A DNA stretch of 64,000 nt from Oculina patagonica (GCF_052425735.1 NC_135770.1:26846001-26910000), one strand, 5' to 3'; counted from the stretch's first letter, positions 3,514-50,100 are shown. Program-made: numbers and translations. The notes: generated from the letters alone by a model not told the origin.

Positions 3514-3636
3514 CATTACAAGATTTGCCATCACCGGTGTACCCCGCATTACAAGCGCAAGTAAAAGAAGCCTCAGTATTAGTGCAGGTCGCCGACAAAT
3601 CACAGTCGTGAGTATTGGTAGTGCATTCATCTATGT
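3514..3636 (-). CDS. Gene A exon: calcium-binding EGF ([12 protein letters not shown]...GYTGDGKSC)
   Basis: 123 bp, phase 1-1, AG acceptor and GTGAGT donor. Confidence 0.9.
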
Positions 3637-12600: not shown

Positions 12601-12693
12601 CAGGAGAGCCAGTCAGTCGGCCCTTTCGAGAGTCTGTCCGTCCGCCCGTCCGTTACGCTGTTAGTCAATCGATCAGTGACATCAGTCGATCAG

Positions 12694-12765
<72 letters not shown>

Positions 12766-15106: not shown

Positions 15107-15142
<36 letters not shown>

Positions 15143-26100: not shown

Positions 26101-29100
26101 TTTATTTCACAACATTTATTTGCTAGGCAAAATCATTATTAGAAATAGAACACTGTGTGGTAAAAACTATTACGGGCTCTAAATCATGTAATTTTGGCGG
26201 GTTTTTTTCACGACCCGTCAACGACAGTTCCTGCCTCCTGCGAAAACTCGCTAATTCTGAGCTTGTATACCAGGTACGCATCGTTCGAATATCCATGACG
26301 TGGTGCAATTGTATTGGATTGGCTTATGCATTACCTGAACAACTTACCACTGAAGGGTATCGAAATATTACGCTTTACTTGCAATTTTACGCGACTTCTT
26401 AATTTCGCAAAAGAGAACTATTTGCAGGAACATAGACCTTAGACCAATAGACCTTTTTCGCTCGGGCTTTTTGTTGCCTCATTACAGACCATGTGATGAT
26501 ACTCTTGAGAATTCTTGCTTTCAAATTTTCAAATAGTCGCGTGTATATGAATGAATAAATTTTATGTCGATAAAAGAAAAATTTTCTAGAGAACATCACG
26601 TGGTCTGTAATGGGAAAACAACCCGCCCAAGCGGATAAGGTGTTTTATCTCCAATTGCAAAATCGTTTGCAACACGAAAGGTCCATTTTTCTAAACACGA
26701 GGTAGCTACAGCCAAGATCAGAAGATGAGGCTGCGCAAACTTCGAAAAGTCAGCCACGAAAAAAGAACATGTCTGTACAAGTGAGGCTAAAGTCTAATAC
26801 TAAGCGCTCTGGCAGTATTTAAGTTTGTAACATCGGTGTATTCAGTCAGTTGCTTTACGTAATAAAACACAAAACCTATCTTTACAGATGTGAACGAGTG
26901 TGAAAATGGACTTGACAGTTGTGACGTCATCTCTACTTACTGCGTCAACACCATTGGGTCGTACTATTGTCAATGTCGTGAAACGGGGTTCACAATGAAT
27001 GGACAAATCTGCGAAGGTATTCAAAAGTATTTTTTCACGTTTTATTTTAAAACATTATTATCGTTACAGCCGCCCGTTTAGATCATAGATACATGGCGTA
27101 CGCGGCAGTGAATAGCCCAATTTCGTTATATTAAAATTCAGCCTAAAACAGTAGGGGTTTATTCCCCAGAGCCTCGTAGTTATGTCTATTGTTTTAGGGT
27201 GAATTTTAAAATATCAAAATTGGGTTATTGTTGTTATTTTAAGGTGAACTCTTTTCTAGGCTACCTTATTCTTACGGGTAAGCTTTTCATTTGCCCGAAC
27301 CCAAGCTCCTCAGGTCGTTTTTTCAGTGCGTTGATAGAATTAACGGCCACATGTTGCAACCCAAAACTTTTTATAAGTTAGCCTAAAAGTACGGCGACTA
27401 GAAAATTAGTACGAAGGACTTATTGCAAATGACAAAAAGGAAAAAACACTAGCACAACACACCTTGAAAACGGCTCACAGCGTGGCCGAATGCTTTAACT
27501 GGATGCGTTATCTGGAAGCCCTAAGTCAAATCCTCCACCATGCTACTAGCTGGATTTGCTGTTGATAATCCCAAGTTTTACACTTCGGCCGCGTTTTTTA
27601 AATAGCTAACTGAGCTGTGTCCCACAATATATACCTGAAAAACACTATATACAGTGCTTCGCTCCACGCTTTTAACTTCTAACCCACACACAATCCCAAT
27701 TATCCCGTTTTGTTTTTCTCTTTAGACGTCGATGAGTGTTTGACGGGCGACCATCAATGTCCATCCCATTCTGCCGACTGTTTCAACAATGAAGGCTCGT
27801 ACAGCTGTGAGTGTAAGCAGGGATACACTGGAGATGGAAGAAACTGTTCAGGTAATTAATAATTTGTTGAACTCAGTTATCGCAAGTACTTTTTATCACT
27901 AGTATAAATTGCACATAGTTTTCCGACAACTCTCAAAAACGAGCTGGCATTTTTCTCAAAAGTGGACACAATTTCACTTGAGCAGAATATTGATTGCCGC
28001 AAAATCACTGTCAGACTCTAGTGCGCATGACTCACCTACAGCGCAAGAGAACGTAATTTGAGGGATTATGCATCAAGTTTTCTTTGCCCCGCGAACGTCA
28101 AAACTTTTGCCCTTTTTAAGATTGCCGTTTATACGTCAAAGTGAGTAGTTTCGTATTCTTATTTTCCTGATGGATTTTTTCAATAATTAGAGAAGACGCT
28201 GACAGAAACAGGAGCTTTCTGACGTTTGTCGTTTGCAATAAATGTTAATCTCTCCACTGTCTTTCCGGACAGATGGTTGCTAACAATGGTTATCAGTAAG
28301 GGTACGGTTATCACTGGGGATTTTGAGATACCTTGCCTAGTTCCTAGGCCTTCCATATTCGCTCCCGTCGATCCGTTTAGGATCACGTGGTACGAGCGAA
28401 AAAACGACTCCAGCCGTTCTCCCCTGATACGTTACCGCAACGAGTAGTTACATTACACCATACTGTAAAAGCCTGGGGAAAAAAGCCATATGAATTAGGC
28501 AATGAGATACCTAAACCGGCCATTTGTGACAAGGCTGAGTTACAGACATATGAAATCATTTGTATTTGTTTGTTTGAAAGAATTAACCCTTCCTGTGTGT
28601 TCAATCCAATATGCAAATATCAACTTGATGTCAGAAACACCCAGTTAAATACTTTCTTTAAAAAAAGTAAACCCGCCCCGTTCAGTACAAAATGAGTTGA
28701 TAACAGAGGGTTGTGTAACATGAGCGAACTGAAATTTAATCTTCTTTGGCATATTAAAAAAGGTAAAGAAAATTGAAGAATAATTCATCAGATCGTAGAC
28801 CTTTCGCGGCCACTTTGCGTAATGACAAAAAAAATGAATTTGGAAGAGAATCATTTTTCTTCCTTCCCCAAAACGTTCAGCAAAAATATGCTACCAAGAT
28901 TCGAATTGAAACAGAGACTTTATAATTTGTGTGTGCAATATTTTATTGCACATGGTAAATGCCATTTCGGTTTTATTTTCGAGTGTTCCGATAAAAGTTT
29001 TCCTCGTTCGCAATAGAACATTTTTTCGGTGCTTTGCCTTGAAGCTCAACAACAAAAAGCGGTAACGGTCAAGGATTTGAGTACAACATGTAATTTAAGT

Positions 29101-32100
29101 ACAAAATAAAGGACAAGCAAAATTTGCCAGCATGTTTCACAAAGTCGTGAGAAACTTTCTCCGCGGTACAATGCGAACTGTTCTTCATAAGCGCGATCAC
29201 TAAATAATTACTCAAACCGAACGCGTGGAAACGATCTAAGGAAAAATTATGGTAGAAATAAATTGAAATAAATGCTATCATATAATTTATTACATAACCT
29301 GTTTTTTTTTTAACATTGGAAATGTCAAATTACAAATACTCTTCTGCTTTCTTCTCGACTCTGTTACGAGTGTAACATTATTTACAAATGGCCTTGCCTA
29401 CGCAGTACACCGACTTAAGCAGTGTTTACTTAATCCGAAAGCATGTATTATCTTAAATGATCTAAAACTGTAAACAGTTTTCAGTAAGTGTCAGTAACAG
29501 CCATCACTTAATATTCAGGATGTCTCATGAGTTCGCATTTAGCGTTGATTTAGATCACATCTATGGCGTTACTGGGAGAGATATTTCCTTGTCCCTCTTC
29601 TTGTTGGTTGATGTCTCGTTCCTGTCCAGTTTGAACAATGCCCACAGCGTTTGGTGATCCAAAAACACGCATCTCGATCTGTTCCGCTTGTGTGTAACTT
29701 TTTCTTAACAAAATTTCAAAGAACGCTACACGAAATCGCCTTATTCTTGCAGCGTAAATTATTGGATTAATTAACGAATTGATAACTGGGAGAAAACCTC
29801 CAACGAAAAAAATTATATAAGCAACATTCAATGAGACTCTAGAAACAATTATTCGAACGACAAATATTGGTGAATAACATAACAGCACTGCGACAACGAT
29901 AAACGTTGTCAATTTTAAGGCCTTCTTTTCTTTTAAGAATTTTTGTCTGGCCTCTGCGGACACTTGCTGGGAGAGAATTTCTTTTTCATGCCGACGAGCT
30001 TCTCTGTAAAGTACAAACTGTCCTATGATAATGATGGCTAGACACAGAACCCAAGCTGCGTTGTTTACGAAAAGAAAGACATCATTATCTATGACGATAG
30101 GAATTATAGTTATTAATAAGATTGTGACCCATGCAAGAACGGAGGCGAGCAGAATGCGGCCTTCGGTGACAATGGTTGTGTACTTGTACGGGTGATAGAG
30201 AGCTAAATATCGTTCCCCGCTCATTAAAACCAAGTGAATGAGCGATGATCCGTATAACAACCTCGACACATTTCTTACTGTCGCCTGAAGTATACATGAT
30301 TCACTTGACGAGTCGCCTTGAAGGATGAATATTACTAGTGGTATCTGCAAAGGTTGAACAATCAGCCCCACCATCGTGTCTGTAGCCGCTAGACACGCCA
30401 CAACGACGTTGGACATCGTTCTCAAGCGCGGTTTGGTTTTCACGGCGATCATCACCAACAGATTGAGTACAATTGTGAATGGAAACGTCACACTGTTGAT
30501 TACGGCGGACGAAACCAAGGTAGCATAAACTTCAGGAGTTATATGGTCAAGTTTTCCTTTGAGGAAAACGTAAATTTCACATTCGGCAGGTATCGCCGGG
30601 GAAGAAACTTCGCTTGAATTCATGATTTCGCTTTGTAGATCTTGGTCTTGATACAATAATGTTGATTTTTCCGTGCTCACAAACAGTGGTTCTTCTTTTA
30701 TAAGCGTTTCTTTATACTTTCTTTTTTATGTTTTTTCCGCTCTCGCATTTGCATTTTATCTATGTTATGTTTTAAATGGGGATAAGCAGTCGCTGCTTTT
30801 TAGCGAAGCTAAGACGCACGTTTCTCTTATTTAAAAGGTTTTCAGTACTTCCTTTTATTGTTCACTCCTCGACTTCCAATAAAGCGTCCTCGGAAAACAG
30901 ACCTAATTAGACATCTTGGCAAATCCATCATGAAAACACGATGTGGGTTGATTGAAAGGAACGCAAATGCAACGGATGTTAATACACAATGACCTGGTTA
31001 CGAAAAATATCGAGCCATTGAAGGCCAATTATTGTAAAAGACCCAAACTTCGAATCCAAACCAGTTATTTACAATAGACTTTTCAAAGCGCATTACCCTT
31101 TAACTGATTGGGAATATTATTTGCGACACAAATTTAAACCATTATTAAATACAATTTCAGTTTACAAACATGGAGAAAATTGAGGCAGTACAAGGTAGTA
31201 GTAAAGGTAGTATCGGTGTACACAGAGACTGAGTCAGTCTTCACTTGCAATTAACAACTGCAGCAAATCTGGCCACTCAAGAATTGGCCAAGAAAACCAC
31301 AGCACGCGCTGCAATGCTACTACAAGACTAATCCACGGCGCAAAAAAGCATAATTTTCACTCGAACCAATGCAGTGATTTGGCACATTAATAAAATAAAA
31401 AAGAAAATAAATAATAATTCATCGAGTCGAAGATAAATAAACAAGATATTTTCAGTTTACCTTTATAAATTATCATTTTTCTGCCGGTCGAAATAACAAA
31501 AACAATCTCCTCGAAACGTTCAACAGAAACATGCTGCAAGATTCAAGTGAAAATTGGCAAGTTGTAATTTGTTTGTCCAATATTTTATTGTACAGGATAA
31601 GTGCAATATTTTTTTTACTTTGAAGACACGAATTTAGCATCAGGTTTTCACCGTTCGCAATCATACATTTTTTCGGTTCTTTGCCTTGAATCTCAACAAA
31701 ATGTGGTGAAGGGGAAAGTTTAGGATTTAAGTGCAAATATGTTTTAAAAAATGAAGCACAAGACAAATTTGTCAGTATGCCTTACAAAGTCAAGAAAAAC
31801 TTTTTCCAGGTTTTTCTCCTGGGGCGAAATACGAACTTGTTCTTCATTCTTGCCATCACTAATAAGCAATCACTTAAATCGAACGGAAGAGAATGATCAC
31901 AGGGTAAAACATTGCAAAGAAAATTGAAAAATGGAATAAATTCAGTCATATATTTTATTACATCACCTGTTCTTTTTTTAACAATACTCTTCTACTTTCT
32001 TTTCTACTCTGTTAAGAGTGATATGGCCCGCTTAGATGATCTAAAATTGTAAACAGTTTTCAGTTAGTGTCAGTTACAGCCATCACTAAATATCCAGGAT

Positions 32101-35100
32101 GTCTCATGTGTTCGCATTTAGCGTTGGTTGATCTTGTTCCTCGGCTGTATTTGACATCATTGTCTATAGGTTTGGAATCACTTCTATGGCGTTACTGGGG
32201 ATGATATTTCCTTGTCCCTCTTCTCTCTGGTTGATGTCTTGTTCCTGTCCTGTCTGAACAATGCCCACAGCGTTTGGTGATCCAAAAACACGCATCTCGA
32301 TCTGTTCCGCTTGTGTGTAGCTTTTCCTCAACAAAATTTCAAAGAACGCTACACGAAATCGCCTTATTCTTGCAGCGTAAATTATTGGATTAATTAACGA
32401 ATTGATAACTGGGAGAAAACCTCCAACGAAAAAAATTATATAAGCAACATTCAATGAAACTTTGGAAATAACTATTCGAACGACAAATATTGGTGAATAA
32501 CATAACAGCACTGCGACAACGATAAACGTTGTCAATTTTAAGGCCTTCTTTTCTTTTAAGAATTTTTCTCTGGCCTCTGCTGAAACTTGCTGTGAGAGAA
32601 TTTCTTTTTCATGCCGACGAGCTTCTCTGTAAAGTACAAACTGTCCTATGATGATGATGGCTAGAAACAGAACCAAAGCTGCGTTGTTTACGGAAAGAAG
32701 GACATCGTTATCTATGACGATAGGAATAGTTAATAATACGATTGTGACCCATGCAAGAGCGGAGGCGAGCAGAATGCGGCCTTCGGTGACAATGGTTGTG
32801 TACTTGTACGGGTGATAGAGAGCTAAATATCGTTCCCCACTCATTAAAACCATGTGAATGAGCGATGATCCGCATAAAAACCTCGACACATTTCTTGCGG
32901 TTGCCTGAAGTATACATGATTCACTTGACGAGTCACCTTGAAGGATGAATATTACTAGTGGTACCTGTAAAGGTTGGACAATCAGTCCCACCATCGCGTC
33001 CGTAGCCGCTAGGCACGCCACAACGACGTTGGACATCGTTCTCAAGCGCGGTTTGGTTTTCACGGCGATCATCACCAACAGATTGAGTACAATTGTGAAT
33101 GGAAACGTCACACTGTTGATGACGGCGGTCGAAACCAAGGTAGCATAAACTTTAGGAGTTATATGGTCAAGTTTTCCTTTGAGGAAAACGTAGATTTCAC
33201 ATTCGGCAGGTATCGCCGGGGAAGAAACTTCGCTTGAATTCATGATTTCACTTTGTAGATTTTGGTCTTGATACAATAATGTTGATTTTTCCGTGCTCAG
33301 AAACAGTGGTTCTTCTTTTATAAGCGTTTCTTTATACTTTCTTTTTTATGTTTTTCCGCTCTCGCATTTGCATTTTATCTATGTTAAGTTTTAAATGGCG
33401 TTAAGCAGTCGCTGCTTTTTAGCGAAGCTAAGACGCACGTTTCTCTTATTTAAAAGGTTTTCAGTACTTCCTTCTTTTGTTCACCACTCTCCTTTCAATA
33501 ATGCGTCCTCGGAAAACCGACCTAATTAGACATCTTGGCAAACCCATCATGAAAACACGATGTGGGTTGATTGAAAGGAAGGCAAATGCAACGGATGTTA
33601 ACACACAATGACCTGCTCACGAAAAATATCGAGCCATTGAAGGCCAATTATGCTAAATAACCCAAACTTCGAATCCAAGCCAGTTGTTTTGAAAAATACT
33701 TTTTTGAAAAGCAATAGCTTTTTACTGGTTGGAAAAGATTATTTGGGCCACGAATTAAGAGCCATTTATTAAGTTAAATTCCAGTTTACAAACAAACATA
33801 CATGCCTACATGTAGCATGATGGGTAAATAGACCTAAACGCTTTTTTTAGTTAATGCTCTTGAAGCCTATCACTTTACTCTAATTTATAACGGTGAAACC
33901 TCATCATTCAATTGTTGTCATCATTCTTAAAAAAATTAGCTGATAATAGAGGTTTTTTTGTTTTTTGTTTAGCACGGGCATGAGATTCCCACTCTTCTAT
34001 TTTGGTAATTTTTTTTAACATTGTGTTTATGTATCGCAGAAACTATGAGAAATTAATAAAAAATTAAAATTTTACCAAAATAAGATAAAAAATCTTCTTC
34101 CAGCGAGTCAATCTAGTATACTGTTTTGCAAACAGTGCTACAGTGCTCTGTTTCTTCTTCAGCTGCCCTGAAATATTGGCAAAACATTCCAAGATTTCTT
34201 TTTTTAAATTTCGAAGTGTGAGCCAGAGTTCCGCTTCTTGATCGCTCCTTCAATCGGCAAAGCGATGTTGACTAGCTATTTCGTCAGGTTGCGAGGTTTT
34301 TTGTTTCGCCCGTCTTCTATCCCATTCATGAACAACATCGCATTTTAACTAATCAGATCCCTACACGAAAGCATCTAATAGCTATCTCATAGTCATAAAA
34401 AACTTAATGTGAAGTTTTTATGTCGTTCAGATGGTTCGAATCCTGCTCGGGGCATGCAATTTTTCTTTCATTTCAGAGACGTGTGTCGAAAGCCATCTGT
34501 AATTTATTTACATATTTCTTTTTATGTCGTTCTTATTCAGGATTTGTTGTACATGAGCAGACTGTATATAATTTAAGAGTTATGTTCATTTCAGGTGATT
34601 CACTGTGCCGTGAACATTTTTATTTTCGCAACAGATAAATAGAAATATAAATGGTACTTTTATAAAATGATAAATAATAATATGATAACTTCTACTGATA
34701 GCTACTGATGTTTAAAAAAAAGAATGTTTGAGTCCTATTTTGGTGGGTAATTTTCAACCTTCTTTTTTATTTGTTTGTTATATTAAGATGTTTTCTTTGT
34801 ATACACACTCGCCTAAAGGCTCGTGTGTATACTGAAAATCAAGTCACTCGTGGAATCTTTCACGGTATGCCACTCGAAAACATTGCATAACTAGTATGTA
34901 TCCGCCATGTTAGAGGAGAAATTTTGCTTGCAAGGGTTTGTGGGACTTCAGTGCACGTGATAGACTTGTTTCAGGTTTGCAAACCTCCTTCGCAGTTATG
35001 ATTTTCTTTGTTTTAACTTGATGAATGATTGATGAGTTTAAGAAAAGTTAGTTCGGCGAATTTAGTGTTACGACAAATTCAACAGCAGTTCGACGAAAAT

Positions 35101-38100
35101 AGTGTTTCGACGAATTCAACAGTTCGATGAACTTGCAATGAGGCTTCGATCACTTCCAAATCAGTTTCGATGAATACCACCTTCTGACGAATTCAGTGTC
35201 TCGATGAAAAAAAAAGTTCCGAAAAATTCGATAAATCCAATCAATTTAATCGAGTATTCAATAATTTCAATCGAGAATTTAAATGAATTCAAACTTTTGG
35301 TAAATAATAGTTTTAGTAAATTCACAAGATCGAATTTTTAACCCGATATTAAAAAGCCCTTTCATGCACAGCCATTTCGCGTTATAAGAAAAAGATGAAT
35401 TTAAAAGATATATTTTTCACATCTGAATAATATACATGCATATATTTTAGCATGCTCCTTGACTGAGAGCACGTCAATTAATCGCAAACAGTGCAGAAAG
35501 TTGAAATTGAGTGCAAAAAGTTGAAACTGAGTGCAGAAAGGTGAAATTAAATTGACTGACAGGAGTCGCGAAAGCGCGCCAAGACAAAATGACGGCCTTT
35601 GTCAGAGGGTTTAAACAATGCAAAAACATATTGATTCATGCAAAGTTTGATCAATTTAACGCAAATAATTAGTATATAAACCAAAGAACTAGTAAATGGA
35701 CGTTTTGCAGTTCAAGAGAGGCTTTACGAAACTACTGAAAGCTACCAAGCGAGGATTTTCTTACGCGGCAGCTCGTAAAGAAGGAAGATTACAAGCCAGA
35801 ATTCAAATTAAGCATTTTGTTCTTCACCTCCCGCTTCGAACAGCTTCGCTAATTGCGGGAGGTGAAGGACATTGTATATTATATGAGTGTGTAAAATAAA
35901 GTTTTGTCGTTGTCGTTCAGTACAAAATGAATTGACAACTTTACATTCATGATCAAAGAGTTAGTTAACACCATAAGCGCACTAAAAATTGAATAGCTAA
36001 GTTTTTAAACTTCCTTGACATATCAAGGCGTATGTACTTGCAACATATACGTATAGCCGTTGCATTTGCCTGTTGAAATTTTTTATTGTTTTCGAGCTAA
36101 CAAAATTTGAAGAAAACTAAAGAATTATTCATGAAGTCGAAGACCTTTCATAGTCACTCATTAGCCATGCACTTCGAGGATAATAAAGAGATAAAGTTGT
36201 GTCGCAAATAATCTTTTCCAATCAGTGAAAGGAAAATACGCTTCTGAAAAGTCTATTCAACTGGCTTGGATTCGAAGTTTGGGTTATTTAGCATGATTGG
36301 GTTTCAATGGCTCGATATTTTTCGTGAGTAGGTCATTGTGCATTAACATCCGTTGCATTTGCCTTCCTTTCAATCAACCCACATCGGGTTTTCATGATGG
36401 GTTTGCCAAGATGTCTAATTAGTTCTGTTTTCCGAGGACACATTATTGGAAGGAGAGTGGTGAACAAAAGAAGGAAGTCCTGAAAAACTTTTTAAAAAGA
36501 GAAACGTGCGTCTTAGCTTTGCAAAAAGCATTGAACTGCTAACACCATTTAAAACTCAGAATAGATAAAATTCAAATGCGAGAGCGGAAAAGTATTTAAA
36601 ACAAATCTAAAAACGCTTATAAAAGAAGAACCACTGTTTGTGAGCACGGAAAAATCAACATTATTGTATCAAGATCAAGATCTACAAAGTGAAATCATGA
36701 ATTCAAGCGAAGTTTCTTCCCCGGCGATACCTGCCGAATGTGAAATCTACGTTTTCCTCAAAGGAAAACTTGACCATATAACTCCTGAAGTTTCTGCCGC
36801 CTTGGTTTCGACCGCCGTCATCAACAGTGTGACGTTTCCATTCACAATTGTACTCAATCTGTTGGTGATGATCGCCGTGAAAACCAAACCGCGCTTGAGA
36901 ACGATGTCCAACGTCGTTGTGGCGTGTCTAGCGGCTACGGACACGATGGTGGGGCTCATTGTCCAACCTTTGCGGATCCCCGTAGCGATATTTACCCTTC
37001 AAGGCGACTCTTCAAGCAAATCATGTTCACTTCAAGCAACAATAAGACATTTGGCGAGATTTTTATGCGGATCATCGCTCATTCACTTGGTTTTAATGAG
37101 CGGGAAACGTTTGTTAGCTATTTCTTATCCGTACAAGTACACCACCACCGTCACCGAAGGACACATACTGGTTGCCTCCGCCATTGCATGGGTCACAATT
37201 GCTTCAATTAGTTTTCCTACCTTCACTGATTATGATGCCCTTCTTTCCGTAAACAACGCAGCTTTGGTTCTGTTTGTAGCCATCATTATCACAGGCCAGT
37301 TTGTACTTTACAGAGAGGCTCGTCGGCATGAAAAAGAAATTCTCTCCCAGCAAGTGTCAGCAGAGTCAAGAGAAAAATTCTTAAAAGAAAAAAAGGCCTT
37401 AAAATTGACAACGTGTATCGTTGTCGCAGTGCTGATATGTTATTTACCAATATTTGTCGTTCGAATAATTGTTTCTAGAGTCTCATTGAATGTTGCTTAT
37501 ATAATTTTTTTCGTTGGAGGTTTTTTCCCAGTTATCAATTCGTTAATTAATCCAATTATTTACGCGGCAAGAATAAGGCCATTTCGTGTAGCGTTTGTTG
37601 AAATTTTGTTGCGGAAAAGCTACACACAAGCGGAACAGTTCGAGATGCGCGTGTTTGGATCACCAAACGATGTGGGCATTGTTCAAACTGGGCAGGAACG
37701 TGATATCAACCAGCAAGACGAGGGACAAGAAAACATCATCCCAAGTAACGCCATAGACAAGGATGTCAAATACAGCGGAGGAACAAGATAAACCAACACC
37801 GAACGCGAGCGTGTGAAACAGCTGTAATTTTCTTTAAATTAAAGTGTTGGCAATTATTGACAGTAACTTAAATCCGTTTACAAGTTCAAGTTATTTAAGA
37901 TAATAAATTCTTTCCCATGTGGTACACAATTTTTAAGTCGTTGTATTCAGCGAAATATGTAAAAATAATATTACAGTCCCAATAAAGTCCCAAATGCTCC
38001 AGGGCTCGAAGAAAAACTGACTAGTTGTTATAATTTGCATGATCAAAAATATGTTATTGCGCAGGATAAATGCATTTCGATTGCTCAGTTGTTCAAATAA

Positions 38101-41100
38101 ACGAATTCAGCAACATATTTTCCAGTTCGCAGTAAATGAATTATTTTCAAGACAGTTTTTGCCTGGAAGATCAACAAAAAGTGGTTACCATAGCCGTACG
38201 GACACCTTTCGACCTGGGGAGGGGGGGGGGGGGGAGACGGGGACGGAGACCTTATTGTCCGAAAAAAGACCATGCGTTAAAAGCCGGATAAAGAGGCACA
38301 TAAAGTGGACAACGAAACGTGCGTGAATTAAAAGAGTGGTATACAAACCTCTTCTGCTTGCTTAAAGGAAACGATAGTTTTGTTTTAATTTCGTGGTGTT
38401 GCCCGAAGATGTCAATGCACTGTATCCCTTTTTCGGAAATTTTTATTTATCCTCTCGAGTTCAGCAAAAATAAAAACTATTTTTGGGGAGCCAATTTAAA
38501 TTGTTTTCCCTCCCCCTACTTTAAAGTGATACAAAAGCGTGTTAAGAAAGTGTCCATCTGAAATCCATCAGTATTAACATTTGAGTCTACATCAATCCTC
38601 TCAGATTTCCTTTATATTTTGCACGGGGCTACAAATTGAGGTGAAAATATCATTAATTCGCAAGATTCTTTACGAATGAATGATATAGGTACCTATATAG
38701 CGCATTTACAAAGCTTAATAGGCTTTACAGTTACAATTTTATTTGATGAGACCGGACAATAGCATATCAGGCGCCTTTGGCAGCCACTATTCGTCCATAT
38801 ATATGATCTCATCACACCACCCAACCCATAGAATAGAAACAGACCACAACACCGGGAACTTCGTGCCCTACTCTACTCGCGCGATAGAGGTCAACGTGCC
38901 CATAGTCGGTTTTGAGCCAAACAATACCCACATTTTGACCTAACTTTCGACCAAATATCTCTGCACGCATTGAAGCTTTCCAAATCAAAACACCATTTTA
39001 ATTAACAGATTAAAATCACCCGATACAATTTTAATTATACCATCAAGATTTGGTAGTAAACCTATTTTAAAAATAGGGTCTAGAGAGGCTCCTGTAAAAA
39101 GACAATGATTTTAGTGTGAAATTACGTTTAAATTAATATCGCCGATGCGGCGTTATTCTAATGGTTCCATTAGCCATGATTTTGTGAAACATTTACCAAA
39201 TAATAAATTAAAGAGAAAAAAGTTTGTACAGTTCAAATGGCACGTATGATTTTAGCGTACTAAAATGTGCTACACGTGAGTACAATAAAAACAAAGTTCT
39301 GAAAGTTTTAGAACAAGTTTCATAACACGATGGATAGGTCGGCTGAAGACGTGAAACATAACGCTTAGATACAGTCAATAAAACTTGTAATATCTAAAGT
39401 GCCCTTAAATACAGACTTACGGCGTGAAAAAGGGTAGACAAGTCATTCGCCATGTTCATCATCGACTGACTTCAGGCGTATCCTCACGAGCAGTTTGATG
39501 CAGAAAGAGAAAACGTCGCTAACTTCTGTCTGCCAGGTAGTTATAATGTTCACAAACAATTCTGCAAGGCTTTAGATTCCACTTGTCTCATAAACGAAGG
39601 CCTCAGTACTTCACATTTTCAGAAGTCTGGTAAGTTACTTTTCACCCGGCCGGGCGCCATGTTGTGTTAGACTAGTACCCAGTCTCTTAAGACTTGCTTA
39701 AGTGCTCAATCAAAACGTTAACGTTGGATAGACCATTGTTTTTTCTGGAAGCGCAGTATTCAAGACAGAAAATTGTTTCACTGTCGTTCTCTGCGCAAAC
39801 AATTTTTCCGACTGCACCTTTCTGTTGGCAATGTTTCTTGATTTCTGCTAACAATTTGTTTGGGCTTTTTTGCTATTGCAAACAATTTCTTTTCAGGATT
39901 TTTAATCCCGCTCCTCCAAAAATTACTGTAATGCTTGAATTATAGCGTTGATGTGAAAACCATTCAAAGGCCTTGTTAACAAGATCGCGCAGTTCGATTT
40001 TGTTAATTACGGGTACTGGGATTACATACCCAACTGGACTTCACTCAGTCCTTATACACTGTGGCTATATTCACATCCTCTCTGGCTCCCGTTCATGCCA
40101 TATTGCAGATTAACGTGATATGTGGAATTTTTAAAGCAGCTTATACGCGAAATTACTTTTAAATTAACGTAAATGAACAAGGATAGTTATGAATGAAAAG
40201 AATCTGGACGGATAACGAAAGCCAAACTTGAGAAAATAAGTCTCTCTTCAAGATGCGCTAGCTGAGCATTCTTGCATTGATCGCTTAAAAGTGGCGATGA
40301 GTATCATCACCAACTGAGGTACGTGTTATGCTATGTGCCAGACATCTCCGGTGCACCGCCATTTTAAATGCGAATCAAAGGGGCCTAAGGACAAGGTTGT
40401 GATGGTATGAATGTCGTCGTCACTTTGTTTCAAGAATTATCTCTCAAAAGAACGCAGAATAACTTCTCAATTGTTCCTTATCTCTACTTATTCTTCATAG
40501 CGTGCGCGAGCACAAAATGGTGGGTTGGGTGGGGGTGTATGTTTTCATGTCGCTGACATATCGCAGATCTGAAAACCATAAACGCCAGACGAGACCGTAC
40601 TTGTAGAATATCGGCCCTCGTTCTTTTTTCTGTTTAGACTCCCAGAACGGCCCTTGCACTTGGTCAATAAGATGTATGTCGAGAGGCAGTGGTCAGGGGC
40701 AGGAGATCATCTTAAAATAACGCGTGATTGCTTATGCATTTCATGATTGTTCCAATCTTGTACTTCGAGTGCTCGCTCCTAACTGACAAACTGCACAAAA
40801 CTGACGCAACGAGCGACTATCGAGGGATTCGTTGCAGAATCAAGTACGTTTAGGTTTGCTTTTAAAATCTAGGCATGCACAGTTCAACCGAAAGTACGAT
40901 ATTTTCCGATTTCGTCTCCAGCGATGATTTTGGTCAGCACCAAGAATCGAGACCTTTGAGCGACACTGAAAGCCCGCCCAAAAGACGACCAAATCTGATT
41001 GGCTGTTGAAAACGTTTTCATTTCCATTTAATTTTCTAAAACGTCACATAAAAATGACAGCAAGTCTTCCTGTTAAATACATATGTCATGTATTTTCGGC

Positions 41101-44100
41101 ATATGAAATGTGTACTTTTTTCAGTAAAAGGTGTACGAAAGGGGCGCCAATTTTCGTCTTAAGAGCGACTTTCTCCAATAATCAACTAAAATCGACTTTC
41201 GCCGGCACAAGTAGAAAAATCGATTTCGCTCATATTTGGTCCATATTTAGGCCATAGTGAGAAACCAAATGGACTGTAGTTAGTTTTTCCTAGATGAAGA
41301 TGAAGTTGTGTCGCAAATAATCTTTTTTAATCAGGGAAAGGAAAATGCGCTTCTAAAAAGTCTATTGTAAACAACAGGCATGGATTCGAAGTTTGGGTTA
41401 TTTAGCATGATTAGGCTTCAATGGCTCGATATTTTTCGTGAGTACGTCATTGTGTTTTAACTTCCGTTCCATTTCCCTTCCTTTCAATCAACCCACATCG
41501 TGTTTCATGATGGATTTGCCAAGATGTCTAATTAGTTCTGTTTTCCGAGGACACATTATTGGAAGGCGAGGAGTGAACAATAAAAGGAAGTACTGAAAAC
41601 CTTTGTAATAAGAGAAACGTGCGTCTTAGCTTTGCAAAAAAGCAGTGAATTGTTTACACCTTTTAAAACTCAGAATAGATAAAATGCAACTGCGAGAGCG
41701 GAAAAGTATTTAAAACAAATCTAAAAACGCTTATAAAAGAAGAACCACTGTTTGTGAGCACGGAAAAATCAACATTATTGCATCAAGACCAAGATCTACA
41801 AAGTGAAATCATGAATTCAAGCGAAGTTTCTTCCCCGGCGATACCTGTCGAATGTGAAATTTACGTTTTCCTCAAAGGAAAACTTGACCATATAACTCCT
41901 AAAGTTTATGCTACCTTGGTTTCGACCGCCGTCATCAACAGCGTGACGTTTCCATTCACAATTGTACTCAATCTGTTGGTGATGATCGCCGTGAAAACCA
42001 AACCGCGCTTGAGAACGAAGTCCAACGTCGTTGTGGCGTGTCTAGCGGCTACGGACACGATGGTGGGGCTCATTGTCCAACCTTTGCGGATCCCCGTAGC
42101 GATATTTACCCTTCAAGGCGACTCTTCAAGCAAATCATGTGCACTTCAAGCAACAATAAGACATTTGGCGAGATTTTTATGCGGATCATCGCTCATTCAC
42201 TTGGTTGTGATGAGCGTGGAACGTTTTTTAGCTATTTCTTATCCGTACAAGTACACCACCACCGTCACCGAAGGACGCATACTGGTTGCCTCCGCCATTG
42301 CATGGGTCACAATTGCTTCAATTAGTTTTCCTACCTTCACTGATTATGATGCCCTTCTTTCCGTAAACAACGCAGCTTTGGTTCTGTTTCTAGCCATCAT
42401 TATCATAGGACAGTTTGTACTTTACAGAGAGGCTCGTCGGCATGAAAAAGAAATTCTCTCCCAGCAAGTGTCAGCAGAGGCAAGAGAAAAATTCTTAAAA
42501 GAAAAAAAGGCCTTAAAATTGACAACGTTTATCGTTGTCGCAGTGCTGATATGTTATTTACCAATAATTGTCGTTCGAATAATTGTTTCTAGAGTCTCAT
42601 TGAATGTTGCTTATATAATTTTTTTCGTTGGAGGTTTTCTCCCAGTTATCAATTCGTTAATTAATCCAATTATTTACGCGGCAAGAATAAGGCCATTTCG
42701 TGTAGCGTTTGTTGAAATTTTGTTGCGGAAAAGCTACACACAAGCGGAACAGTTCGAGATGCGCGTTTTTGGATCACCAAACGATGTGGGCATTGTTCAG
42801 ACCGGACAGGAACGAGATATCAACCAGCAGCAAGAGGGACAAGAAAGCATCATCCCCAGTAACGCCATTGATGTGATCTCAAACCTCGAGACAAGGATGT
42901 CAAATACAGCCGAGGAACAAGATATATAAACCAACACCGAACGCGAGCGTATGAAACAGCTGCAATTTGCTTTAATTAAAGTGTTGGCAATTACTGACAG
43001 TAACTTAAATCCGTTTACAAGTTCAAGTTATTTAAGATAATGAATGCTGTCCCATGTGGTACACAATTTTTAAGTCTTTGTATTTAGCGAAATATGTAAA
43101 AATAATTTAACACTACCAATAAAGTCCCAAATGCTCCAGGGCTCGAAGAAAAGCTGACTAGTAGTTATAATTGGCCTGAGCAATATGCTATTGCACAGGA
43201 TAAATGCATTCAATTGCTCAGTTGTTCAAATAAACGAATTCAGCGACATATTTTCCAGTTCGCAATAAATAAATTATTTCTAAGACAGTTTTTGCCCTGA
43301 AGATCAACAAAAAGTGGTTACCATAGGCGTGTGGATAACTTTCGACCCGGGGGAGGGGGAGGTGGGGGAAGACCTTATTGTCCAAATAAAGACCATGCAT
43401 TGAAAGCTAGACTGCAAAATAGTCGTATCTTTTGCTAACGTGCTCGGTCTTCGAACGAGAGCGAGAGGTCTGGGGCCAATGTCAAAATTCTGAGTGAGAC
43501 TGGGGAGAGTGCTTTTCCAACGACTTTAGAGAAAAACGACTGTTTTGCAGTCTAGTTAAAAGCCGGATAAAGAGGCACACAAAGTGGAAAACGAAACGTG
43601 CGTGCATTAAAAGAGTGGTATACAAACCTCTTCTGCTTGCTTGAAGGAAACGATAATTCCATGGCATTGCCCGAAGATGTCAATGCGCTGTATCCCTTTT
43701 TTTCGGAAATATTTTATTTATCCTCTCGAGTTCAGCAAAAATTAAACTATTCTTGGGGAGCCGAATCATATTGTTTTCCCCTCCCCTCCCCCACTTTAAA
43801 GTCATACAAAAGCGTGTTAAAAAAAAGGTCCATCTGAAATCCATACAGTATTAAAATTCGAGTCTACATCAACCCTCTCGGATTTCCTTTATATTTTGCA
43901 TGGGGCTACAAATAAATAAATAAATAAATAATAATCATTTCTATAGCGCTATTTAGCTAATCTTTCATAGCGCTTTACAATCACTATGCTAAAAAAAAAA
44001 AATAAAATTGAGGTGAAAATGCTGTAAGTAGAATATTACCGCAAAATTCTTTACGAATGAATGATATAGGTGCTTATATAACGCATTTACAAAGCTCAAT

Positions 44101-47100
44101 AGGCTTCACAGTTACAATTTTATTGGATGAGACCGGACATCAGCATATCAGCCCTTGGCAGCCGCTATCCGTCCGTGTATATGATCTCATCACACCAGCC
44201 AACCCATAGAATAGAAACAGACCACAACACCGGGAACTTCGTGCCCTACTCTACACGAGGTCAACGTGCCCATGGTCGGTTTGGAGCCAAAAAATACCCC
44301 TGGACTTCACTCAGTCCTTATACACTGTGGTTATATCCACCTTCTCTCTAGCTCCTATTCATGCCATATTGCAGATCAATGTGCTATATGGAATTTTTCA
44401 AGCAGCTCACACACAAAATTCCTTTTAAATTAATTAAAACACCAATGAATGAGTGGTTATCTATTGAAAGCCAGATAAATAAAAGTTCACTTCCCATTTG
44501 TTTTCATACTGTTTGGGCACACCTTGCAGAAGTTGACATTATTTTCTGCTGAGTTGCAGAATTCATCAGATCAGAATTGCAACATTATTTCATTGCAAAT
44601 GTAAAGTGATATTTACAGCCTGTTTTGAAATTACTTCCGGTGGAAGCAATAAAAGCTGAAAATTTGTGTTTCCGTTAGAAGTTGAATGCATCGCCGTTAG
44701 AAAAAAGTAGCATCCATTTCACGGGAAATGTAGCCGTTAGCAATGGCATAAGTAGCCGTTACGTAAAGAATAACATGAGGTTAAGCGTCTTTTGGCAGTA
44801 TCCAATAGATCAGTGTGCCATTTAAAACTGTATCCATCTTTGCCTTGATCAAGTTGTTGAAAGTTCGTTTTTACTGACACTTCCATAATCTAGACTGCGT
44901 AGCAGGCGTACTCTTTTGATTGATTTTTTTTGTTTCCAGCTTTCCTGTAGCCAATTCTTACAATAAATGTAAATGAATGAAATACTGTAAATGATTTAAT
45001 AAACGCCAACTCTGAAAAAACGCCGCGTTTAAAAATCAAAAATAAAAAAAAATGGTTTCAAACATCAGCTGCTCTTTGCATTTTCGATGTTGGGAAAGTC
45101 AAATTACAAACATTTTTCTGCAGATTTCTGTTCAGATTTTATTGGGAGTGTAATATTATTTTACATATTTCGTTTGGGACAACGACTTAAAAATTGTGTA
45201 CCGCATGAAAAAGCATTCATTCAAATGACTTGAACTTGTAAACGGATTTAAGTTACTGTCAGTAATTGCTGTTTCATACGCTCGCGTCAACGTTCGGTGT
45301 TGGTTTGTCATGTTCCTCGGCTGTATTTGACATCCTTGTCTCGAGGTTTGGGATCACATCAATGGCGTTACTAAGGATGATGTTTTCTTGTTCCTCTTCT
45401 TGCTGGTTGATATCTCGTTCCTGTCCAGTTTGAACAATGCCCACAGCGTTTGGTGATCCAAACACGCGCATCTCCATCTGTTCCGCTTGCTTGTAGCTTT
45501 TCCGCAACAAAATTTCAAAAAACGCTACACGAAATGGCCTTATTCTTGCCGCGTAAATGATTGGATTAATTAACGAATTGATAATTGGGAGAAATCCTCC
45601 AACGTAATAAATTATAAAAGAAACATTTAATGGGACTTTAGAAACAATTATTCGAACGACAAATATTGGTAAATAACATATCAGCACTGCAACAACGATA
45701 AACGTTGTCAATTTTAAGGCCTTCTTTTCTTTTAAGAATTTTTCTCTGGCCTCTGCTGAAACTTGCTGTGAGAGAATTTCTTTTTCATGCCGACGAGCCT
45801 CTCTGTAAAGTACAAACTGTCCTATGATAACGATGGCTAGAGACAGAAGTAAAGCTACGGTGTTTATGGAAAGAAGGACATCATTTATAGCAGCGGAAAT
45901 AGGAAAACTAATTAAAGCAACTGTGACCCATGCAATGGCGGAGGCAACCAGTATGCGTCCTTCAGTGACGGTGGTGGTGTACTGGTACGGATAAGAAATA
46001 GCTAAAAAACGTTCCCCACTCATTAGAACCAAGTGAATGAGCGATGTTCCGCATAAAAACCTCGACACATTTCTTGCTGTTTCCTGAAGAATACATGATT
46101 CACTTGATGTGTCGCCTTGAAGGATGAATATCCCTACCGAGATCCGCAAAGGTTGGACAATCAGTCCCACCATCGTGTCCGTAGCCGCTAGACACGCCAC
46201 AACGACGTTGGACATCGTTCTCAAGCGCGGTTTGGTTTTCACGGCGATCATCACCAGTAGATTAAGTACAATTGTGAAAGGAAGCGTCAGAGTGTTAATG
46301 GCGGTTCCCGAAACCACGGTGGCATAAACTTCAGCAGTTAAATTGTCAGGCTTACAATCGAGTAAAGCATAGATTATACATCCGGCAGGTATCGCCCGGC
46401 GAGAAACTTCGGTTGAATTCATATCTTTGCTTTCTGGATCTGGTTTTTATAGAGTAATGTTGATTTTTTCGTGCTAAGCGATAACAGTGCTTCTTCTTTT
46501 ATAAGCGTTTCCTTAGACTTTTTTGGCTTTTTCGGCTTTTCCGCTATTGCATTTGCATTTCATCTCATTTAAGGAGGTGTTGGCCATTCTCTGCTTTTTA
46601 GCAGTGAATGGTTCGTTCCTCCTATTTAAAAAGTTTTTAGTACTTCCTTCTATTGTTCCCCCCTCTCTTTCTCATAATGCGTCCTCGGAAAAACAGTATT
46701 AATAAGACATCTTTGCAAATCCATGATGAAAACAGAATGTGAGTTGATTGAAAAGAAAGTAATTGCAACGGATGTTAAAACACAATGACCTGCTCACGAA
46801 AACATCGAGTATTTGAAGCCCAATAAAGAGCCTAAACTTCGAATCCAAGCTATTTGTATTCTAAAAGACTTAACAAACAAAGCATTACCCTTTTACTAAT
46901 TGGAAAAGATTATTTGCGACACAAATTAAGGGCCATTTATTAAATAAAATTTCAGTTAAAATACAAAGAAACAGGCTAACATGTAACAATGATGGAAAGA
47001 TGGACTTCAATATTCGGCTTTTAAACGTTGAGTTATTTCTTTACTGCACTGAATATTCCATTGAATATGACAGTAAAAATTATTACACATAATAACATAG

Positions 47101-50100
47101 GTGACAAATAACACCTTAATATTGGCGCGATATTATAACGTTTATTTATAATTACTCGTGTGAAATTATAAAATTGTCCTGGTAAAGTAGTTAGCGGCAA
47201 GATGGCGTTCGGTATAAAAGATGTTTTAAAGTATAAACTTGGTACATTTAATTTTACTTGAATTTTATCTTGGCTAGATAACCATGGCCATGTAATAAAA
47301 CTTTTGATGATATTTTATATTTCAAAACGACTTCAAGACTTAAGCCAATCACACAAATTGCATCGAGCTGATTTTTGAGCGTTTTACACGGGCACTATGG
47401 TAATATTGTGAGAAATAATTGACAGTTTATTCTTCTTTGAAACTATCAACAGCAAAAAGGAATCTCTAAAGGGTGTTCTCCAAGACAAAAAAAACTTGCG
47501 AGCTTAACTGAGGCAAAATGTATGCTTTCAGCTTTTCAAAGCTCAGATTTCAAGATGCAGTATACCAGTCAAAAACCAACGATTGTAAGCGTAATTTGTC
47601 ACCTATAATATTAAAATCTAAAAAGGCTCGGGAAATTATTACAATATTGACAAAAGGAGAGGTTTTATTTCCTAATTTCACTCGTCACCATTTGATTACC
47701 CATACAAATTTTTGTCATCATCCTTTAAAAAGTAAATTGCGCGGGATAAATTAGCACGGACATGAAACTCCCACTCTTCTATCAGGATAATTTTTGTTAC
47801 ATTTTGCGTTTATGAATTACAGAAACATGACAAACTCCATTACGAAATTTTGAAATTCGATCAAAAAGGCATTAATAATATAAAACTAGCAATTTGTACC
47901 AGAGTCAAACTTGACCGTTTCTCAGTGTTGTTTTTTTTTTCAACAGCCTCGACATAACGGAAATACATTTCCAGCATTTGTGTTTTTCTTCAAAATTTGG
48001 AAATGTACATGTGTTCCAGCCGAGTTGAATAGTTTGTCAGCTAGTGAGTTTTTTTCATGACGCCATCGAATATTATCCAATCAGATCCCCAAATGACAGC
48101 ATCTGACAGTTTTATTTTATAATCATAGCTCAATAACTAGCTGACTTCGGGCTTTATTGTACGCGAGCAGACTGCATTGAACTTTCAGATAAATAGAGTA
48201 TTTATGACAAATTGAATTGATGTGGCCCAAAATGAATGCATGAGTCCTCTTCTTGTAGGTAATGTTCTAACCTTCTTTAATATTTGTTTATTACATTAAG
48301 ACGTGAATGAATGTGAAGATGGAACTCATGACTGTGATCGTGAACTGGCCATCTGCTTGAACACAGAAGGATCATACACTTGTCAATGCAGGCCAGGTTA
48401 CACTGGAGATGGTACAAATTGTTCAGGTATTTTTTTTTTTTGTTTCTTACTTCTCAGAGCAGGTGTATGGAACATGTACTGTATGCACGCATGTATGTAC
48501 GCACTTAATGATGACCTTTTGCTGACGCATAGAATTCTATGGAAAAATGTAAAATAAATCAATGATGATTTACGTCTTTTTCTATTCCACACGTCAGCAG
48601 ACGCTCGCCATCAAGTGCGTCCATATACATGCTCTATACACCACACAGAGAAGTTAGAAACTAAAATCAATCATCAATTAATCAATCAATCATTCAATCA
48701 ATCAACCAATCAATCAGTCAGTAGTCAGTCAGTCATTTAGTCAGAGCTAGATGGTTTTGCATGCGGTTTTTGGGGTCCCGAATACTTCTCCACACTTTGT
48801 AACTTTTAATGGTCAACTGGTCAACCTCCAACCAGTTTTCGATTCCTTAACAAGTTCCTGTTCTATTTACAAGAATTGTTTGTCTATTTTTCAACTATCA
48901 CAGCAATTCCAAATATATTGACACTTAAAATGAAACAATTTATTTATTATCTATTTATAACACGAAAAATGATAGCTGCAAAGTAACTTAATACATCAAA
49001 CACCCGCGATCGAGGAAAGTGTTCGATAAAATATCTCAACAAAGATATTGAAAAGACAGTTCCAAATAAGAAAAACCTGCGAGTTAGATCTTACCATTTA
49101 AGAACCTGTTAGGCTAAAATTTGCAATTAAACTCCATTTTAAATTTGAAAACAGGTTGGTATTTTTTTTTATTTTTTTCTTTGTTCGTGAGCGGGCGGTA
49201 TTCTACAAATCCTGCGATCTGATTGGTTCCGGGAGCGGGCGGTATTCTCCCATCCGGCCCGCTCACAGCGGGCGGTATCCGTTGCGAGACGAATCGTCGA
49301 GTGTATTTTCCGCGCGAAATCATTTTGTAGCGCCGGTACGAAAGAACAAACGAAAGATTTGCCCTGCAAAATCGAAATAGCTGCTCACCAACCATTGTAA
49401 ATGTGAACATACAAAATAGAAGGGGAATTAAAGGCCTCGAAGTTCTTCTTTAAGGCGAGTATTCTCTTCTTTATCGACAAAATCGAGTTTTAGTTGTAGT
49501 TTGTGATTGTTTGTGCATTTTGCAATCATTTTCACGCCATTGCGGTAAGCTGCACAGGTTTTAAACTTCAATTTGGGGTAAAAACTGCCTTCTAATCGGC
49601 CACTTTTTTGCCAAAACAAAACGCTAGTTGCCTTCATTCAAGTAAATGAGATTCTTTAACTAAAAACAGTCAAAATAATTCTCGCAATATTGTGCCGTAC
49701 GTCCAAACTACTCATTTCATTCAGTTTCACTTTTGCACTGTTTATCACAAAGAAATTCTGCTGGGAATCAACGCAGAGTTTATTAATTCGTTAAATACGA
49801 GTGTGTATAGCTATTCCGAAACTGTTTTTCAGTAAGATAGTATTTTTTTAGTCAGAGAAATTAATATCCCACGAACACAGTTCCTTTCAAAACATTCATC
49901 GGGGAAGCCGAAATCGATTTAAAAGTGTTTAGTGTTGTCAATGATAATGCTTTGACTCGATTTTACATTTATGCTATATTTACTACTTCAATTTCTTTAA
50001 TTGAATCACTACAGTGTAAATTAAATATGCCGGCTTTCTGTGAGTACGGTTTATTTAAGCGAGGCTATTTTATTCCGAATTAAACAACAAACAGCATTTT

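Follow-up and report, generated by a model that had tools for sequence, protein, structure and literature searches.

The window analysed here is a stretch of 64,000 nucleotides of Oculina patagonica DNA (GCF_052425735.1, NC_135770.1:26846001-26910000). Its + strand carries exons of a polycystin-1-like gene, hereafter referred to as the host gene, and five intronless GPCR genes lie between two of these exons. The domains encoded along the + strand are, in this order, D8C, five cbEGF domains, F5/8 type C, REJ, a candidate GPS, PLAT and the polycystin channel. The D8C (uromodulin-like) exon has an open frame at 21838..22338 (PF23283, 63.5 bits) and is 62% identical to positions 3707-4102 of L011, an orthologous locus in another coral assembly. 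It is followed by EGF exon 1 (25832..25960), which has an orthologue both in L011 (76%) and in L012, a locus from a second coral assembly, and by cbEGF exons 2 (26888..27016) and 3 (27726..27851; 126 nt, phase 1-1, EGF_CA 51.6 bits, donor GT at 27852), neither of which has a counterpart in the orthologues. Beyond the GPCR genes, the series continues with cbEGF exons 4 (48301..48426; 126 nt, phase 1-1, EGF_CA 55 bits, 93% amino acid identity to L011) and 5 (50594..50716; 91% identity to L011), an open frame for F5/8 type C, or discoidin (52299..52790; PF00754, 66.4 bits), and the first and second parts of REJ (55350..56228, PF02010 88 bits, with tblastn matches to PKD1-like proteins; 58761..59468, PF02010 76 bits).

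The host gene extends about 8.5 kb beyond the end of the window. In this downstream part (locus L006), also on the + strand, a candidate GPS lies near 67.1 kb, PLAT spans roughly 68.1-69.3 kb (PF01477, 78 bits; 31% identity to residues 3093-3314 of the starfish PKD1L1 protein P0167), and an open frame encoding Polycystin_dom (PF20519, 96 bits) and PKD_channel (PF08016, 99 bits) ends at 72.55 kb. The GPS match includes the letters HLTSFG, but it covers the C-terminal half of the motif only and its score of 20.5 bits for PF01825 is below the cut-off of 22.5. Over the parts from REJ to the channel, the host showed 22-35% identity to P0167 and three full-length PKD1-like proteins in tblastn searches. 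A reading of this DNA made beforehand from the sequence alone had named the host as a polycystin-1/REJ-like gene, and the Pfam matches to REJ, PLAT, Polycystin_dom and PKD_channel bear this out. The host shares REJ, PLAT, the polycystin domain, a channel-like C-terminal membrane region and, in candidate form, the GPS motif with the polycystin-1-like/REJ family, including sea urchin REJ, vertebrate PKD1, PKD1L and PKDREJ, and the PKD1-like protein of Nematostella (PMC8846589). However, its ectodomain is composed of D8C, five cbEGF domains and discoidin, whereas that of vertebrate PKD1 contains LRR, C-type lectin and PKD repeats, and that of the Nematostella PKD1-like protein contains PKD and WSC.

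The five GPCR genes are located in what is putatively one host intron, 20,449 bp in length (27852..48300, +), which also contains dispersed repeats. The exons on either side of this interval are indeed phase-1 cbEGF exons that join in frame, as previously claimed, with AG before and GT after both of them, and both EGF exons 3 and 4 begin with D-V-D/N-E-C. We nevertheless rejected the in-frame join of 27851 to 48301 as evidence of splicing, because all five host EGF exons are of symmetric phase 1-1 and any two such exons will join in frame. An EGF motif scan found no further + strand EGF exon between 27851 and 48301. Likewise, a tblastx comparison with the host paralogue revealed no hidden host exons within the 20 kb interval, as the matches listed there were four short ones (14-27 amino acids), none of them colinear with the exon order of the paralogue.

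We also considered whether the interval separates two genes rather than two exons, such that a secreted D8C-EGF gene would end after EGF exon 3, an EGF-REJ-PKD gene would start before EGF exon 4, and the GPCR genes would be intergenic. Such a division would be consistent with the free combination of phase 1-1 exons and with the stop codon that is met two codons into a read-through past 27851. The host paralogue, too, has an intron of ~8 kb at a comparable place, and no transcript evidence from the runs examined joined 27851 to 48301. The read mapping over 25700-31199, drawn from four runs of which one was polyA, comprised four raw reads and no splice joints; the depth was zero on EGF exons 1 and 2 and about 1.5-11 in the bin of exon 3, and the deep bins corresponded to repeats. 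The region of GPCR 1 was covered only by contigs of 90-95% identity from runs labelled as other organisms, and these contigs run into non-coding flanks and therefore represent DNA. This mapping does not indicate silence. What speaks against the division into two genes is the orthologue, in which the exons from D8C to REJ are on one strand with matching phases and are 0.3-1.5 kb apart, leaving little room for a terminator, a promoter and a signal-peptide exon. The non-colinearity of the tblastx matches argues in the same direction, and there is a precedent in Nematostella, where RT-PCR united two PKD1-like gene models into a single gene (PMC8846589). Altogether, we regard two separate genes as unlikely. 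In L011, D8C, EGF1, EGF4, EGF5, discoidin and REJ are colinear within about 8 kb and show the same phase-1 AG/GT exon structure as the host. This compact, colinear arrangement supports assigning the exons left and right of the GPCR cluster to one predicted host gene, and 27851 would then be spliced to 48301.

Within the interval, the five intact single-exon 7TM ORFs that had been noted in the order -,-,+,+,- were all recovered, with lengths of 370-391 amino acids and matches to Pfam 7tm_1. The ORF of GPCR 1 is located at 29550-30680 on the - strand, with a CDS from the first ATG at 29553..30623 (357 amino acids) and a stop at 29550-29552. It is followed on the same strand by GPCR 2 (ORF 32164-33276, CDS from the first ATG 32167..33243, 359 amino acids). 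GPCR 3 (ORF 36640-37791, CDS from the first ATG 36697..37788, 364 amino acids) and GPCR 4 (ORF 41754-42929, CDS from the first ATG 41811..42926, 372 amino acids) are encoded by the + strand, and GPCR 5 (ORF 45274-46422, CDS from the first ATG 45277..46422, 382 amino acids) by the - strand. None of the five products, when read from the first ATG, contains an internal stop. All five match 7tm_1 (PF00001) with E-values of 1e-23 to 1e-25 and scores of 82-91 bits, the gathering cut-off being 30.5 bits. As judged from their sequences, the five guest genes are class A (rhodopsin-like) GPCRs. In the alignment, ACLAATD in TM2 and NPIIY in TM7 are present in every copy, and the TM2 Asp, R3.50 and NPxxY are kept throughout. 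The E/DRY motif of TM3 reads ERY or ERF in four copies and KRL in GPCR 3. The C-terminal tails are of unequal length, and GPCR 5 is the most divergent copy, with 78-81% amino acid identity to the other four. Three further features depart from the usual class A pattern: CYxP takes the place of CWxP in TM6, ECL2 lacks a Cys, and TM5 is without Pro at its usual position.

The description of these receptors as chemoreceptor-like received no specific support, since the same five proteins scored far lower with 7tm_4 (25-36 bits) and Srx (19-25 bits) than with 7tm_1. The nearest solved structures in the PDB are adrenergic (aminergic), TAAR, histamine H2, D2 and adenosine A2A receptors (best match with an E-value of about 5e-18 and 69 bits), and the NCBI names of the Oculina paralogues are MSH-, adenosine-, histamine- and octopamine-receptor-like. 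The TM2 Asp, R3.50 and NPxxY are held in common with the aminergic, trace-amine, histamine H2 and adenosine class A GPCRs, but the array is only distantly related to these receptors and its ligand cannot be inferred from them.

GPCRs 1-5 are monophyletic (tree support 100/94), and identity falls to 50% with the next paralogue of the genome. The duplicated DNA units have lengths of 1.7-2.1 kb and nucleotide identities of 82-93%, and each unit reaches about 545 bp into the DNA upstream of the CDS. Their orientation is mixed. Two tandem pairs can be recognized, GPCRs 1/2 (91% nucleotide identity over 1.77 kb, dS 0.11) and GPCRs 3/4 (92.6% over 2.1 kb, dS 0.065). Across whole genes, the pairwise dS ranged from 0.065 to 0.29 and dN/dS from 0.28 to 0.70, with dN smaller than dS in all ten pairs (Fisher test). 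The copies thus share a recent common origin and are under purifying selection. Windows with pN/pS of about 0.9-1.2 were located at the N-terminus, TM5 and TM6-ECL3, where they comprise few sites with uneven pS; positive selection was not demonstrated by the pairwise dN/dS values and the window scan of the five copies. We read this private clade of five genes as the probable product of a young tandem and inverted expansion.

It might be argued that the copies are decaying retrocopies or pseudogenes that keep their frames open by chance, as GPCR expression was not seen in the runs examined, the acidic residue and the Tyr of the E/DRY motif are lost in GPCR 3, and the C-terminal tails differ in length. 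This view is difficult to reconcile with five frames of 357-382 codons that have stayed open although the synonymous divergence reaches 0.29 changes per site, with dN being significantly smaller than dS in every pair, or with the retention of the TM2 Asp, R3.50 and NPxxY in every copy. Moreover, the 5' flank was duplicated as well, which implies that the duplication was DNA-mediated. We consider decay to be highly improbable, and all five GPCR genes are presumably expressed.

Dispersed repeats are present in two of the spacers. The spacer between GPCRs 2 and 3 contains a dispersed repeat of about 400 bp (35426..35818, no strand assigned), which occurs in at least 40 other places of the genome with 76-85% identity. 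Another one, of about 1.2-1.5 kb, is located in the spacer between GPCRs 3 and 4 (38944..40400, no strand assigned) and is present in at least 40 copies with 74-79% identity.

The host orthologues used for comparison were found in a search of 90% cluster representatives. Candidates from the 50% cluster representatives were rejected, being either short contigs or the discoidin-type paralogue L005. The orthologous intron, which there runs from EGF1 to EGF4, is 1.5 kb long in L011 and 2.6 kb long in L012; no GPCR match was found in either. The sequence-only reading had named a lack of conserved nesting among the observations that would count against it, and such nesting is absent from these two coral assemblies. 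Upstream of the D8C exon of the orthologue (L014), a stretch of 10.7 kb was likewise free of GPCRs. Conversely, no EGF or REJ exons were found within 10 kb of the closest foreign GPCRs (L001, L002 and L013). On these comparisons, the nest looks like a lineage-specific arrangement and not like a conserved host-guest module. It should be noted that the nest could be shared with closer relatives of O. patagonica, because the REJ exon is only 70% and 54% identical at the amino acid level to those of the comparison assemblies, which may thus be distant.

These findings bear on the proposal that the cluster and its host constitute a linked sensory module, in which the array and the host would be kept together by co-regulation in the same sensory cells or by mutual transcriptional gating. 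A sensory use is plausible for the GPCRs as well as for the polycystin-like host, all of them being membrane receptors, a PKD1-like gene of Nematostella is hair-cell specific (PMC8846589), and purifying selection acts on all five GPCR copies. In addition, two of the GPCR genes are on the host strand, and their terminators could truncate host transcripts. Nevertheless, the proposal is without support from the locus, as the nesting is not conserved in the orthologous gene of the two other assemblies and the nearest GPCR relatives are located elsewhere. Each copy has its own duplicated 5' flank, the orientations are mixed, and no GPCR is present in the paralogue that lies head-to-head with the host. 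Furthermore, the genome contains 104 close GPCR matches (E<=1e-40) that are scattered across many chromosomes, so that some are to be expected in introns by chance. We therefore judge a functional module to be very unlikely. A more specific variant is that the new array has rewired its host: transcription starting from the five GPCR promoters, or terminating at the two copies on the host strand, could control whether full-length polycystin-1-like mRNA is made. Sensory cells would then produce the GPCRs or the PKD1-like receptor but not both, by a lineage-specific, mutually exclusive switch that arose through nesting. This is a conjecture to which we would give hardly any credence.

In our opinion, the locus is probably best explained by an incidental, lineage-specific nesting, in which an intronless GPCR gene was amplified in place within a transposon-inflated intron of a PKD1-like gene. 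The founder would have been an intronless orphan class A GPCR that came into the intron in the lineage of O. patagonica, and local tandem and inverted DNA duplication would have given rise to five copies that are predicted to be functional, each with about 0.55 kb of 5' flank. Over the period of the GPCR duplications, these events and transposon insertions may have enlarged the intron from roughly 2 kb to 20 kb, in a host lineage that appears to carry two EGF exons not present in the orthologues. The long intron would merely have been a tolerant site for landing and expansion, and the nesting would be selectively neutral. If there is any effect on the host, it would most likely be passive transcriptional interference without designed coupling, although a nest of incidental origin could have acquired regulatory coupling at a later stage.

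Both gene nesting and GPCR expansion have already been described, in animals generally and in corals. Typically, a nest originates from the insertion of a short, young duplicate into a long intron, and there are also complex cases in which a nest comprises several internal genes (PMC5174743). The present locus resembles the nested genes of Drosophila and vertebrates (Assis 2016, PMC5174743) in that a large gene with many exons houses short, intronless, young duplicates in one long intron, with several internal genes per host; three of the five are antisense to the host, and the sense copies lack introns. It differs in the way the GPCR genes multiplied, namely within the intron through tandem and inverted duplication of DNA and not by independent RNA-mediated insertions. 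Among the domain families of corals, that of the rhodopsin-like GPCRs has been amplified the most, by tandem duplication and in a genus- or species-specific manner (Noel et al. 2023, PMC10236652). The array conforms to this pattern in its family, its DNA-level tandem duplication and its genus- or species-specific distribution, but it lies inside a PKD1-like gene, and the intron nesting of GPCR arrays is not discussed in that study.

Beyond annotation, the arrangement matters little. For annotation it is relevant that gene predictors may be misled, because a gene-filled intron of 20 kb invites the splitting of the PKD1-like gene into two models. Should host and guests turn out to be expressed reciprocally, to which nothing found here points, the locus would offer a handy natural setting in which to study transcriptional interference in a cnidarian. 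As it stands, it represents a clean, datable case of a coral intron that has grown tenfold through transposon insertion and in-place receptor amplification, and it suggests that coral GPCR expansions can arise inside other genes.

An ORF scan recovered the five intact single-exon 7TM ORFs that the sequence-only reading had described, in the orientations -,-,+,+,- (GPCR 1, 29550-30680, minus strand; GPCR 2, 32164-33276, minus; GPCR 3, 36640-37791, plus; GPCR 4, 41754-42929, plus; GPCR 5, 45274-46422, minus). Counted from the first ATG, their products are 357-382 residues long without internal stops, and all five score 82-91 bits against the Pfam 7tm_1 profile, which has a gathering score of 30.5. 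The label 'chemoreceptor-like' that had been attached to these genes found no specific support, as the 7tm_4 and Srx profiles scored far below 7tm_1. The closest solved structures were those of adrenergic, trace-amine, histamine H2, dopamine and adenosine receptors (~69 bits), and related Oculina genes bear generic class A names at NCBI. Judged by these matches, we regard GPCR 1-5 as orphan class A receptors. In GPCR 3 (36697-37788) the E/DRY motif of TM3 reads KRL, in place of the ERY or ERF seen in the other four genes, a change that might affect G protein coupling or signal incipient decay.

The host gene on the plus strand starts with a D8C (uromodulin-like) exon (open frame 21838-22338), followed by EGF exons 1 (25832-25960), 2 (26888-27016), 3 (27726-27851), 4 (48301-48426) and 5 (50594-50716), a small Cys-rich exon at ~51.7 kb, an F5/8 type C exon (52299-52790) and two REJ exons (55350-56228 and 58761-59468). 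Past the end of the window the gene continues with a putative GPS motif, PLAT and a terminal 691-codon open frame with Polycystin_dom and PKD_channel. The description of the host as 'polycystin-1/REJ-like' is upheld by tblastn with a starfish PKD1L1 (P0167) and three full-length PKD1-like proteins, whose hits on REJ, PLAT and the channel-like region are ordered as expected. EGF exons 3 and 4, both 126 nt long, bounded by AG/GT and scoring as calcium-binding EGF domains, indeed end at 27851 and start at 48301, on either side of the GPCR genes. The weight given to their in-frame join is lost, since all five EGF exons are of phase 1-1 and any pair of such symmetric exons joins in frame.

Searches found no run recorded as RNA that contained the host gene. 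In the mapped sequencing runs, depth was zero over EGF exons 1 and 2 and near zero in the bin with exon 3, and no splice joints were found. The deep bins correspond to dispersed repeats of very high copy number within the short introns that separate EGF exons 1-3 (26436-26619 and 26988-27355), where summed contig depth in DNA-type runs reaches ~60,000 with many loose ends. Good indirect evidence comes from another coral assembly, in which a counterpart of the host REJ exon (P0228), at 70% identity, lies on a 1.3 Mb contig. At this orthologous locus (L011), D8C (62% identity), EGF1 (76%), EGF4 (93%), EGF5 (91%), a small Cys-rich exon, discoidin (68%) and REJ (70-76%) lie on a single strand within ~8 kb, their AG/GT phase-1 structure matches that of the host, and the locus extends on to PLAT and PKD_channel. 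The exon order is the same at the orthologous locus of a third assembly (L012). Were the D8C-EGF part one gene and the EGF-REJ-PKD part another, the end of the first and the start of the second would have to fit into gaps of 0.3-1.5 kb at L011, which leave little space for both; we consider this improbable. Because L011 is compact and colinear and L012 shares its order, the two parts very probably belong to a single host gene. There is a precedent in Nematostella, where two PKD1-like gene models turned out by RT-PCR to be a single gene (PMC8846589).

The nest itself is not conserved in these two other coral assemblies. Both orthologues have only three EGF exons, corresponding to EGF1, EGF4 and EGF5, and their EGF1-to-EGF4 introns measure 1.5 kb (L011) and 2.6 kb (L012). 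Neither GPCR 1 nor GPCR 5 matched these introns at E<1e-3, and no open stretch in them exceeds 87 and 133 codons, respectively. Likewise, the sequence reaching 10.7 kb upstream from the D8C exon of the orthologue (L014) contains no GPCR; a different PKD1-like gene has its 3' end there. Among the closest foreign GPCRs, P0005 and P0009 share their assembly with L011 but are on another contig, and no EGF or REJ exons lie within 10 kb of them, of P0006 or of the sister-clade P0040. Since the orthologous introns are short and GPCR-free and only three EGF exons are present, the GPCR array, together with EGF exons 2 and 3 and the bulk of the 20 kb, appears to be specific to the lineage of the window, for which the comparison assemblies may be distant. 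The proposal of a linked sensory module, for which a lack of conserved nesting together with unrelated expression patterns had been named as refuting, thus fails on conservation, the one part of this test that was run. EGF exons 2 and 3, without counterpart at either locus, would have been gained in this lineage or lost in the others; EGF3 shares 57-61% identity with EGF exons of a neighbouring minus-strand paralogue.

GPCR 1-5 form a private monophyletic clade (support 100/94), and the next paralogue in the 529 Mb genome is only 50% identical. At least 104 related GPCR genes are dispersed over the chromosomes, many in small clusters of their own. The genes were copied at the DNA level, in units of 1.7-2.1 kb that are 82-93% identical and take in ~545 bp of 5' flank; GPCR 1/2 and GPCR 3/4 are tandem pairs, with inverted relations between the groups. 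Pairwise dS is 0.065-0.29 and dN/dS 0.28-0.70, the highest value being that of GPCR 3 versus GPCR 5. As dN is significantly smaller than dS in 10 out of 10 pairs, the copies are constrained and probably functional. Differences cluster in the N-terminus, outer TM3 and TM4-ECL2-TM5, and TM1-TM2, ICL3 and TM7 are near-invariant; some windows have pN/pS of ~1, which does not demonstrate positive selection. Synonymous divergence is patchy (0.07-0.39), which suggests some gene conversion. The sole close relative outside the cluster is a minus-strand fragment on contig C9 (5010621-5010989), 72% identical to GPCR 5 residues 247-369 and with an internal TGA; it may be a remnant of the source copy or a scattered pseudogene fragment. 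Contigs that match GPCR 1 and its flanks (29245-31035) at 90-95% identity occur in several variants in runs with other organism codes (X9 and X13); related copies are probably present in close relatives or divergent populations. Between the GPCR genes lie dispersed repeats of ~400 bp (~35426-35818; at least 40 other places in the genome) and ~1.2-1.5 kb (~38944-40400; at least 40 copies).

Head-to-head with the host lies a minus-strand paralogue of the same layout, with several D8C domains, seven EGF exons, REJ and PLAT, and with no GPCR. Its part within the window (3518-15851) holds D8C-like exons at ~15851-15531, 14492-14262, 10148-9921 and 8381-8154 and cbEGF exons at 11837, 11014, 9091, 3903 and 3625; two further EGF exons, REJ (52-59% amino acid identity to the host) and PLAT lie to the left of the window. 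Its EGF repeats are highly alike, which suggests internal homogenisation. Antisense in its ~8 kb intron, two plus-strand open frames (52-2315) encode a Pao/BEL-type LTR retrotransposon pol (Peptidase_A17; integrase zinc finger, rve, DUF5641), with a GC content of 49% versus ~38% in the surroundings. The PKD1-like gene upstream of the orthologue (L014, 347-5788) is in tandem with it, on the same strand, instead of head-to-head as in the window, and so an inversion or independent duplication divides the two lineages. Another PKD1-like paralogue type, on a 190 kb contig (ENA ERZ25071802), carries two F5/8 type C exons, and the 10 kb upstream of its REJ contain no EGF exon; in this coral PKD1-like family the ectodomain is modular and variable.

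The best-supported account of the array is that an intronless GPCR founder gene would have arrived in the host intron and been amplified in place by unequal and inverted duplication, carrying its promoter region along, and that transposon insertions and these duplications would have swollen the intron about tenfold. This account fits the pattern of nested genes, which make up ~10% of Drosophila genes; the guests tend to be short duplicates of recent origin, the hosts are large genes whose introns are long, and one host can have several guests (PMC5174743). It also fits the history of rhodopsin-like GPCRs, which have been amplified more than any other domain family in coral genomes, by tandem duplication and with genus or species specificity (PMC10236652). 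Nesting may lead to transcriptional interference, most likely from the two same-strand GPCRs, whose terminators would lie within the host pre-mRNA. Such interference, if present, would be a by-product of nesting and would not speak for a designed module. We view the locus as a fresh instance of two well-described phenomena combined, real but ordinary.
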